Assembly (NCBI RefSeq): GCF_002113885.1
Contig: NW_018408786.1
Span: forward strand, 1,223,136-1,287,135
Direction: 5' to 3'
Length of the DNA stretch: 64,000 bases
Source of the DNA: Mizuhopecten yessoensis
Lineage: Eukaryota
Notes under the pieces: generated by a model
Database searches by the model: none
What the model saw: only the letters and a program-made list of their open reading frames with translations
Told to the model about the DNA's origin: nothing
Position numbers and translations under genes: made by a program
Shown here: in pieces, positions 1,950 to 48,197 of the stretch
How positions within the stretch are numbered: position 1 is the stretch's first letter
Layout of the letters: each line of letters opens with the position of its first letter

Positions 1950-1988
1950 CTGTGCTAGAAATGGATCGGCGGCGTCGCAGCGTCACAG
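1950..1988 (-). CDS. CLASP: 39-nt frame-preserving microexon (AVTLRRRRSISST-), phase 1-1
   Basis: Long pyrimidine tract and gacag| acceptor, CAG|gtaaca donor, CpG-rich, open in the phase-1 frame. Confidence 0.7.
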
Positions 1989-3099: not shown

Positions 3100-3228
3100 C
3101 TGAGGCGCTGGGCGTCTTTCTCCCTGAGGCCAGGCCACTGCTACTTGTCTTCTTGGCCTGCGGGACTTTGGTGGATAGAGGCCGTGCAAATTCATTGTCA
3201 TCACAATCGGATGGCCCTCTGCTTGGAG
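3100..3228 (-). CDS. CLASP: CLASP linker exon B (APSRGPSDCDDNEFARPLSTKVPQAKKTSSSGLASGRKTPSAS-), 129 nt, phase 1-1
   Basis: ttttgattcttatag| and CAG|gtacga splice sites; GC-rich; paralogous to exon A. Confidence 0.82.
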
Positions 3229-3454
3229 CTATAAGAATCAAAAGGTTTTAGAAGTTGAGCCATTGAAGAAATCATACTGAAATTTTCATTTTCAGATGAA
3301 GCACTATTCATTTGTATAAGTCAATGGTTATAATGTGTACATCTTTCAATGTCTTCGTACAGAAAAACAAAACTTCCTAATTCAGTTTATGGACAGTATT
3401 CTACTCATGCCGTTTCTTCTGACTGACCATTAACATTTCTTTTGGCATCACTTA

Positions 3455-3720
3455 TAATGAAATTCCTTGTAATATCACTAATCACTACACAAAATTCATT
3501 GTAACATCACTTGTCACTGGTCCAATGTTAGACCAATGAAATTCCTTGTTACATCACTAATCAATAGACCAATGAAATTCATTGCAACAACACTTACCAC
3601 TGCTCCAATGGAGTTCATTCTTATATCACTAATCGCTAGACCAATGAAATTCATTGTTACCTCACTAATCACTAGATTAATGAAAATTCATTGTAACATC
3701 ACTTATCACTGGTCCAATGG
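3455..3720. repeat. Degenerate ~38-bp tandem repeat (ccaatgaaattcattgtaacatcacttatcact...)
   Basis: About 7 recurrences of aatgaaattc/atcact motifs. Confidence 0.75.
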
Positions 3721-3861
3721 AACGATATTTTCCTCATTACTAGAATTGAAAGTAAAGCACACATTACCTAGAATTTAAAACGCTCACCATTAGATATACG
3801 CAATAAGCAGCAACTTATTGGATAAAGTTTGGGAAGTTAAAAAAATTTGGCAATAGGATCT

Positions 3862-3922
3862 GATTGGTTGGTAGTACAGGGTTTAACGTCCTATCAACAG
3901 CTAAGGTCGTTTAAGAATGTGC
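3862..3922 (-). mobile_element. SINE 3' tail fragment
   Basis: gtttaacgtcctatcaacagctaaggtc matches the longer copy at 54662-54920. Confidence 0.65.
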
Positions 3923-4035
3923 AACAGGGATGGAAACAATTTCATCTTTTTTCATTTTTGAATGTTACTGAGCTACTGAGGCTATGATGTAAGAACTGTA
4001 CTGCAATGTGTGCTACTAGAATGGTCTCCCCTTAC

Positions 4036-4146
4036 CTCTGGGTATGGTGGAGGAGCTAGTGCTGCGCTTGGTCTGGCCGCTGCTGCGGTAGGAGGACGGT
4101 CGGCCGAAGTCGAGCTCATCGTCAGTGGTGCTTCCCCGGCTTGGTG
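4036..4146 (-). CDS. CLASP: CLASP linker exon A (APSRGSTTDDELDFGRPSSYRSSGQTKRSTSSSTIPR-), 111 nt, phase 1-1
   Basis: ttgtctttgcag| and GAG|gtaagg splice sites; GC-rich island in an AT-rich intron. The DDE...RPSS Ser-rich sequence resembles the vertebrate CLASP linker (recalled FDDEDSVDGNRPSS). Confidence 0.85.
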
Positions 4147-8334: not shown

Positions 8335-8852
8335 CAAGACATCTTTATATAAGACTACCGGACAGTTCAACAAGACATCTTTATATAAGACTATCCGACA
8401 GTTCAACAAGACATCTTTTTATAAGACTACCGGACAGTTCAACAAGACATCTTTATATAAGACTACCGGACAGTTCAACAAGACATCTTTATATAAGACT
8501 ATCNNNNNNNNNNNNNNNNNNNNNNNNNNNNNNNNNNNNNNNNNNNNNNNNNNNNNNNNNNNNNNNNNNNNNNNNNNNNNNNNNNNNNNNNNNNNNNNNN
8601 NNNNNNNNNNNNNNNNNNNNNNNNNNNNNNNNNNNNNNNNATATAAGACTATCGGACAGTTCAACAAGACATCTTTATATAAGACTACCGGATAGTTCAA
8701 CAAGACATCTTTATATAAGACTATCGGACAGTTCAACAAGACATCTTTTTATAAGACTATCGGACAGTACAACAAGACATCTTTATAAAAGACTATCGGA
8801 CAGTTCAACAAGACATCTTTATATAAGACTATCGGACAGTTCAACAAGACAA
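8335..8852. repeat. 36-bp minisatellite (aagactaccggacagttcaacaagacatctttatat) spanning an assembly gap
   Basis: Near-identical units on both sides of the N run at 8504-8640. Confidence 0.95.
8504..8640. other. Assembly gap (137 N)
   Basis: Run of N. Confidence 1.
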
Positions 8853-8969: not shown

Positions 8970-9033
8970 CTTTCTTTGTGGAGCCAATGAACGCCTTATA
9001 TTTCTGTATGATCTTTTCCTTGATGGAAACCAT
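8970..9033 (-). CDS. Candidate alternative start exon (MVSIKEKIIQKYKAFIGSTKK-)
   Basis: gaaATGG start, 21 codons + 1 nt, AAG|GTAAAG donor in phase 1; basic, amphipathic-looking peptide. Confidence 0.5.
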
Positions 9034-33277: not shown

Positions 33278-33446
33278 TCTTTAATTTGGACGTCTTGGGT
33301 GTTTCTGGAAACTGGAAGACATTGTCATTTTCATCGATGTCTTCAAACAATTCCTTGAAGTCATCAAACGGCGATGTGTAGTGCATTAACGGTGATGACC
33401 AAAGGTCTCCGTTGAGTTCTTCAGAGGGGGATCGATCCGAACTCAT
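33278..33446 (-). CDS. CLASP: Candidate alternative first coding exon of CLASP (MSSDRSPSEELNGDLWSSPLMHYTSPFDDFKELFEDIDENDNVFQFPETPKTSKLK-, 56 codons + 1 nt)
   Basis: Protein-like acidic ORF from ATG 33446; donor AGA|GTAAGT falls exactly in phase 1. Confidence 0.7.
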
Positions 33447-48123: not shown

Positions 48124-48197
48124 CATAGTCATGAGCTGTGGCAAGCATATTTCCTGACATTTTCACCTCGTCAAATTTGGCAAATATCTGGTTTAAC
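48124..48197 (-). CDS. CLASP: CLASP exon ending TOG1 (LNQIFAKFDEVKMSGNMLATAHDY-), 74 nt, phase 2-1
   Basis: tgatag| and |gtaagt splice sites. Matches the CLASP LN.IF.KFDEV..SGNM motif. Confidence 0.95.

Follow-up and report, generated by a model that had tools for sequence, protein, structure and literature searches.

Tandemly duplicated linker exons in a scallop CLASP gene: very probably a constitutive repeat and not a splicing switch

Candidate pairs of mutually exclusive exons usually lie in tandem, resemble each other in sequence, have equal phase and are of roughly similar length (PMC5740500). A candidate pair is rejected if reads join the two exons and their joint inclusion causes no frame shift (Hatje et al., PMC5740500). 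In human, 87% of the mutually exclusive exon regions fall within secondary-structure elements (PMC5740500). Two adjacent linker exons, here called A and B, of the CLASP gene of the scallop Mizuhopecten yessoensis have a tandem-duplication origin, the reading frame and sequence similarity in common with such pairs. They differ by the presence of exon-joining reads, by lengths divisible by three and by a long intron, and no bridging isoforms were found. Unlike most human mutually exclusive exon regions, they encode a disordered linker.

Small alternative exons are also known from mammalian CLASP1 and CLASP2. A 36-residue exon containing an SxIP motif was reported to be mostly missing from Clasp1 mRNA in N1E-115 cells, as observed by RT-PCR (PMC6373834). 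The scallop exons resemble these mammalian exons in being small, in frame and located in Ser-rich disordered CLASP linkers. The mammalian SxIP exon lies in a different linker, the EB-binding SxIP region, whereas A and B are located between TOG1 and TOG2, and their skipping was not seen. The alternative element of the scallop linker is a 39-nt microexon (1988-1950), in contrast to the SxIP exon of mammals.

A further class comprises lineage-specific tandem exon duplications that are kept as constitutive internal repeats. This class and the scallop pair share several features: similar exons lie side by side in equal phase, outgroups have one copy, every product contains both copies, and the repeat is in frame and falls within a disordered region. 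Within the class the pair is not unusual; homology between its introns is gone, and the new copy is without the C-terminal third. Both exons are already included in public M. yessoensis gene models, and the duplication adds a further example of a familiar process. The pair very probably arose by tandem duplication of one symmetric exon in the scallop lineage and was fixed as a constitutive repeat, not as a splicing switch. It represents a clean, datable case of a symmetric duplicate exon with this fate, in which B is clearly the parent and A the daughter that evolves faster. The comparison also brings to light a short motif of the TOG1-TOG2 linker that is conserved from molluscs to chordates, and scallops with their two copies could offer a natural handle on its role.

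The CLASP gene and its linker exons

The window, which is the whole stretch of 64,000 nucleotides that was analysed (contig NW_018408786.1, positions 1,223,136 to 1,287,135 of the forward strand), contains the 5′ half of the single M. yessoensis gene for the microtubule regulator CLASP (CLIP-associating protein) on the minus strand. An upstream minus-strand exon of the window gave a match to TOG1 of human CLASP1 (PDB 6mq5); outside the window, the contig carries TOG2-type exons further downstream. CLASP-type TOG (HEAT-repeat) domains lie on both sides of the linker, identifying the gene as a CLASP. A query with a 50-residue TOG2 exon retrieved full-length CLASPs from a representative protein library. 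An abalone CLASP as query yielded named mollusc CLASPs, including CLIP-associating protein 1-like isoforms of M. yessoensis. In the full-length products, which bear the name CLIP-associating protein, the Pfam domains PF12348 (CLASP_N) and PF21041 are found. Exons were queried singly, and spliced products were taken from database proteins only. A second TOG1 open reading frame, which is mostly intron, gave chance matches only against PDB.

A whole-genome search with the CLASP_N profile had a sole match, an intronless open reading frame of 634 residues on another contig (L001 568-2472, G000:C5457). Pfam assigned it to a CEP104-like/XMAP215-type TOG domain, and it was rejected as unrelated to the CLASP locus. 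The profile missed the CLASP exons because these are too short for a six-frame search.

The last exon on the TOG1 side is located at 48124..48197 on the minus strand (FAKFDEVKMSGNMLATAHDY) and encodes a peptide ending in ...ATAHDY, as identified by tblastn with M. yessoensis isoform X1. Its final G begins the Ala codon that is split across the junction with exon A. Across this junction the RefSeq proteins read ...AHDY, followed by APSRG. The flanking boundaries named in the original prediction, an upstream donor at 48124 and an acceptor of the downstream microexon at 1988, were both recovered. A and B code for the first part of the linker between the tubulin-binding domains TOG1 and TOG2; this linker is rich in Ser, Arg and Lys. 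No Pfam family matched exon A, exon B or the whole linker, as is expected for a disordered linker.

Exon A (4036..4146, minus strand) comprises 111 nt and 37 codons (APSRGSTT...STIPR), exon B (3100..3228, minus strand) 129 nt and 43 codons (APSRGPSD...KTPSAS). The splice sites of both were read from the sequence. On the minus strand, exon A is preceded by a pyrimidine tract and AG and followed by GTAAGG, while exon B has TTCTTATAG on its 5′ side and GTACGA on its 3′ side. In each exon the first two bases finish a split codon and the last base is carried over, which defines phase 1-1. Either exon may therefore be in or out, and the frame is unchanged. The intron between them (3229..4035, minus strand) is 807 nt long with GT..AG ends and is spliced out in transcripts, as seen from joints in RNA reads. 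The translations given earlier for both exons were reproduced, and the phase, the good splice sites and the spacing of 807 nt that had been claimed for them all hold in the minus-strand sequence.

Two repeats lie in the intron: a minisatellite at 3429-3719, with a 36-nt unit in about 7-8 diverged copies, and, at about 3860-3922, a short interspersed element, which has at least 40 genome copies of 84-94% identity. A comparison of the introns flanking A with those flanking B revealed no extended homology beyond pyrimidine tracts.

Products and RNA reads across the pair

In all 38 pectinid CLASP proteins fetched, A is joined directly to B. For M. yessoensis the set includes the 14 RefSeq isoforms X1-X14 as well as the original model; models of Pecten maximus, Argopecten irradians and Ylistrum balloti and one assembled transcript complete it. 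The RefSeq models are computational; proteins were gathered via 90%-identity clusters, a level at which some isoforms may be masked, with 15 members listed of one 19-member cluster. Scallop exon boundaries outside Mizuhopecten were inferred from proteins. Isoforms X1-X14 and the original model of M. yessoensis all read ...AHDY, A, B. The same order, A then B, was found in P0287 / L011, a Logan contig assembled from a public run. A search with the A+B segment returned 18 clusters, each covering 99-100% of A+B; a half-coverage match was not among them. Isoforms with A only or B only were absent from the 38 proteins. Short transcript-derived protein fragments spanning the linker gave 92 candidates, none of them significant.

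The only variable element of the TOG1-TOG2 linker is the 39-nt microexon (1950..1988, minus strand; AVTLRRRRSISST), which is of phase 1-1 and encodes 13 residues including RRRRS. It is present in 34 and absent from 4 of the 38 pectinid proteins. Forms with and without an equivalent basic microexon occur in Haliotis, Mytilus, Ostrea and Pomacea (KRKRSGS, RRRSIS, KRRRSIAG), indicating an old, conserved alternative microexon. The scallop microexon carries a predicted kinase-type site, R-R-x-S.

Four raw RNA-seq runs from four studies were mapped to a 6,000-nt stretch (L010) that covers A, B, the microexon and the exon following it. Subtraction of 500 converts L010 coordinates into window coordinates. 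Runs X22 and X23 had zero coverage of A, B and the downstream exon. In runs X19 and X24, which come from different studies, A and B were covered about 5-6x. A joint at L010 3728|4536, corresponding to 3228|4036 of the window, leaves out 807 nt; its ends are CT..AC on the plus strand and GT..AG on the minus strand. This 4036>3228 joint was observed in 6 reads with 5 start positions in X19 and likewise in X24, summing up to 12 reads. A is thus spliced directly to B within the same molecules. Among joints with at least 3 reads, no other one left A or B in X19 and X24 at this depth of about 5-6x, including 4036>1988 and a joint from 4036 to the exon after the microexon. The reads alone are compatible with a B-skipping minority of up to roughly a quarter of transcripts. 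Four variants of exon B occur in the RNA reads, all of them third-position synonymous changes.

Sparse RNA reads at L010 4201-4535 probably originate from other copies of the short interspersed element. In L010 1-125 (C5459:1222636-1222760, just left of the window), about 120 nt were heavily covered in all four RNA runs. Many opposite-strand joints and heterogeneous loose ends were found there; this is probably a transcribed inverted repeat or mobile element unrelated to CLASP.

The original prediction had proposed a switch between A, B and A+B, either mutually exclusive or combinatorial. The 12 A-B reads and the 38 of 38 proteins with both exons do not support it, and as far as the data go both exons are in all reads, an outcome that the prediction itself had named as refuting the switch. 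The joint that would mark inclusion of both copies, 4036>3228, was found with 6 + 6 reads in X19 and X24; 4036>1988 stayed below 3 reads, and 48124>3228, the joint that skips A, falls outside the 6,000 nt mapped.

A and B may still be cassette exons, which are mostly included together while one or the other is skipped in some tissues or stages, yielding linker-length variants. Their symmetry agrees with such a mode, as skipping of either preserves the frame, and the neighbouring microexon of the same linker is alternative. A also shows a somewhat lower dS and a higher omega than B, and read depth is low, with two informative runs. Yet A and B are both present in each of the 38 pectinid proteins, which represent four genera, while the same annotations do record skipping of the 13-residue microexon (4/38). 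The A+B-segment search, too, gave no half-coverage match, and all 12 listed junction reads leaving A go to B. Skipped forms that preserve the frame are not hidden by nonsense-mediated decay. Weighed together, this evidence renders a cassette mode improbable. Rare or tissue-restricted skipping of A or B is compatible with the read depth available, though likewise unlikely.

Origin and constraint of the two copies

The peptides of A and B share 13 identities over 31 positions and are collinear from residue 1 (BLASTP, single comparison, E = 3e-5). Their local BLOSUM62 score is 53, as compared to 24.6 +/- 4.7 in 20,000 composition-preserving shuffles (p = 1.5e-4). The likeness therefore exceeds what a shared Ser/Arg-rich composition provides. 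An alignment of A and B from the first residue had been claimed before and is borne out by BLASTP. With adjacent exons on one strand, one phase and peptide similarity beyond chance, the pair has the properties of a tandem duplication. Synonymous divergence between A and B is saturated (dS 1.87).

This saturation, the short length and biased composition of the exons and the loss of homology between the flanking introns might point to a different origin of A. It would then have arisen de novo from the intron, and its likeness to B would be chance or convergent composition of Ser/Arg-rich low-complexity exons. Such an origin is very unlikely, as the score lies above the composition-preserving shuffles (p = 1.5e-4), the match is collinear from residue 1 in identical phase and A directly adjoins its putative parent exon. 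Moreover, A retains exactly the columns that are conserved in molluscs, namely APSRG, the acidic D-D/E-x-D patch, F-[AG]-[KR]-P and basic and Ser-rich residues. The tail GRKTPSAS of B, the C-terminal third of the parental exon, is missing in A.

A putative SxIP-like sequence, S-T-I-P, is located at the end of A (4036-4050, minus strand) in Mizuhopecten only. Pecten, Argopecten, Ylistrum and the Logan transcript have S-S-V-P instead, so S-T-I-P is not a conserved EB-binding motif.

Two copies, A then B, were found only in the four pectinid genera Mizuhopecten, Pecten, Argopecten and Ylistrum. A single copy is present in the bivalves Mytilus, Dreissena, Mya, Mercenaria, Saccostrea, Ostrea, Crassostrea and Pinctada. 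The same holds for Haliotis, Pomacea, Littorina, Patella, Babylonia, Biomphalaria, Lymnaea, Gigantopelta, octopuses (Octopus), the chiton Liolophura and other molluscs. An annelid, a nemertean, amphioxus and a vertebrate representative (P0085) also have one copy. Exon A was absent from every non-pectinid mollusc examined. The tandem exon duplication of the original prediction is hence corroborated by the cross-mollusc comparison, and its statement that vertebrate CLASPs have one such exon agrees with the single vertebrate representative examined.

The single exon of oysters (Ostreida), Pinctada and Mytilus scored 82-94 (BLOSUM62) against B and 45-63 against A. Since the closest outgroups score far higher against B, B is the ancestral ortholog and A the diverged upstream daughter. 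The duplication is specific to scallops; oysters, pearl oysters and mussels had already branched off when it took place, and the common ancestor of the four scallop genera already carried it. The lost intron homology and the saturated dS between A and B fit an old event predating this ancestor.

For an estimate of dN/dS, the exons of M. yessoensis were compared with the second pectinid transcript, L011. Of the differences in exon A (34 codons), 5 are non-synonymous and 9 synonymous (omega 0.145). In exon B (40 codons), 20 synonymous differences are accompanied by 0 non-synonymous ones (omega 0). Control exons of TOG2 yielded an omega of 0.06-0.08. A and B are both protein-coding and under purifying selection, B being extremely constrained. 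The earlier suggestion that both exons are under selection is thus supported by the dN/dS values. The dS of A is 0.47 and that of B 1.72 (Fisher p = 0.03). A lower dS is sometimes seen in regulated exons, but on 34-40 codons the difference is weak and carries no argument. A difference in GC3 between A and B was inconsistent between the two species compared.

Splicing choice, promoters and the linker repeat

Although the pair has the hallmarks of mutually exclusive exons named above, a mode in which each mRNA carries exactly one of them is extremely improbable, since 12 reads join A to B, both exons occur in every annotated product and in one assembled transcript, lengths of 111 and 129 nt are divisible by three and keep joint inclusion in frame, the intron, at 807 nt, greatly exceeds the steric limit of roughly 50 nt, and exon-joining reads without frame shift reject a candidate (PMC5740500). 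Neither a steric intron nor a frame shift nor a U2/U12 incompatibility occurs at A-B, where the distance is 807 nt, the frame is kept and both introns are GT..AG. Given ordinary splice sites, an intron without steric constraint and lengths divisible by three, nothing in the anatomy of the pair enforces a choice between the copies. Similarity and equal phase of tandem exons are not enough to infer a splicing switch; evidence from junctions is needed.

Two conserved alternative first coding exons are located inside the 44-kb intron upstream of A and give rise to isoforms without TOG1. The first (8971..9033, minus strand; MVSIKEKIIQKYKAFIGSTKK) was identified by tblastn with 100% identity to the N-terminus of Pecten maximus X14. 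The second (33282..33446, minus strand; MSSDRSPSEELNGDLW...), also found by tblastn, belongs to M. yessoensis isoform X14. A run of N at about 8500-8650 lies inside a tandem repeat close to the former. Pecten X14 and Argopecten X12 start with a sequence matching the 8971-9033 exon and continue with A, then B; this N-terminus was not seen among the M. yessoensis proteins fetched. M. yessoensis X14 (P0288) reads ...TSKLK, then TPSRGSTT, and proceeds through A and B. The products of three alternative first exons all include A joined to B. As both TOG1-less first exons splice to A and then B, promoter choice does not select between the copies. The supposed coupling of a switch to promoter choice is not supported by these isoforms, all of which carry A then B. 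The TOG1-less scallop isoforms are comparable to the short CLASP isoforms of vertebrates.

The constitutive repeat was very probably established as follows. One phase 1-1 linker exon was duplicated in tandem in the scallop lineage. B retained the ancestral sequence; the upstream copy A drifted away from it and no longer has the C-terminal tail, but its conserved core persists. Both are spliced in together whichever promoter is used, resulting in a constitutive internal repeat of 37 residues. Constraint on the second copy of the motif suggests that it is functional, with a putative binding or regulatory role.

A more far-reaching proposal is that some unsampled cell type or stage, e.g. neurons, gametes or early embryos, may leave out A or B. 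A regulated dosage of one versus two copies of the linker motif D-D/E-x-D-F-[AG]-[KR]-P could then tune the cooperation of TOG1 and TOG2. In a weaker form, the constitutive second copy would have gained a new partner, the S-T-I-P restricted to Mizuhopecten being a candidate extra EB-binding SxIP site. The proposal is a long shot.

The constitutive repeat itself lengthens the linker and provides two copies of the conserved acidic/aromatic/basic motif. Measured between the anchors FDEVK and VDExxF, the linker comprises about 110-123 residues in scallops, as compared to roughly 65-100 in other molluscs.
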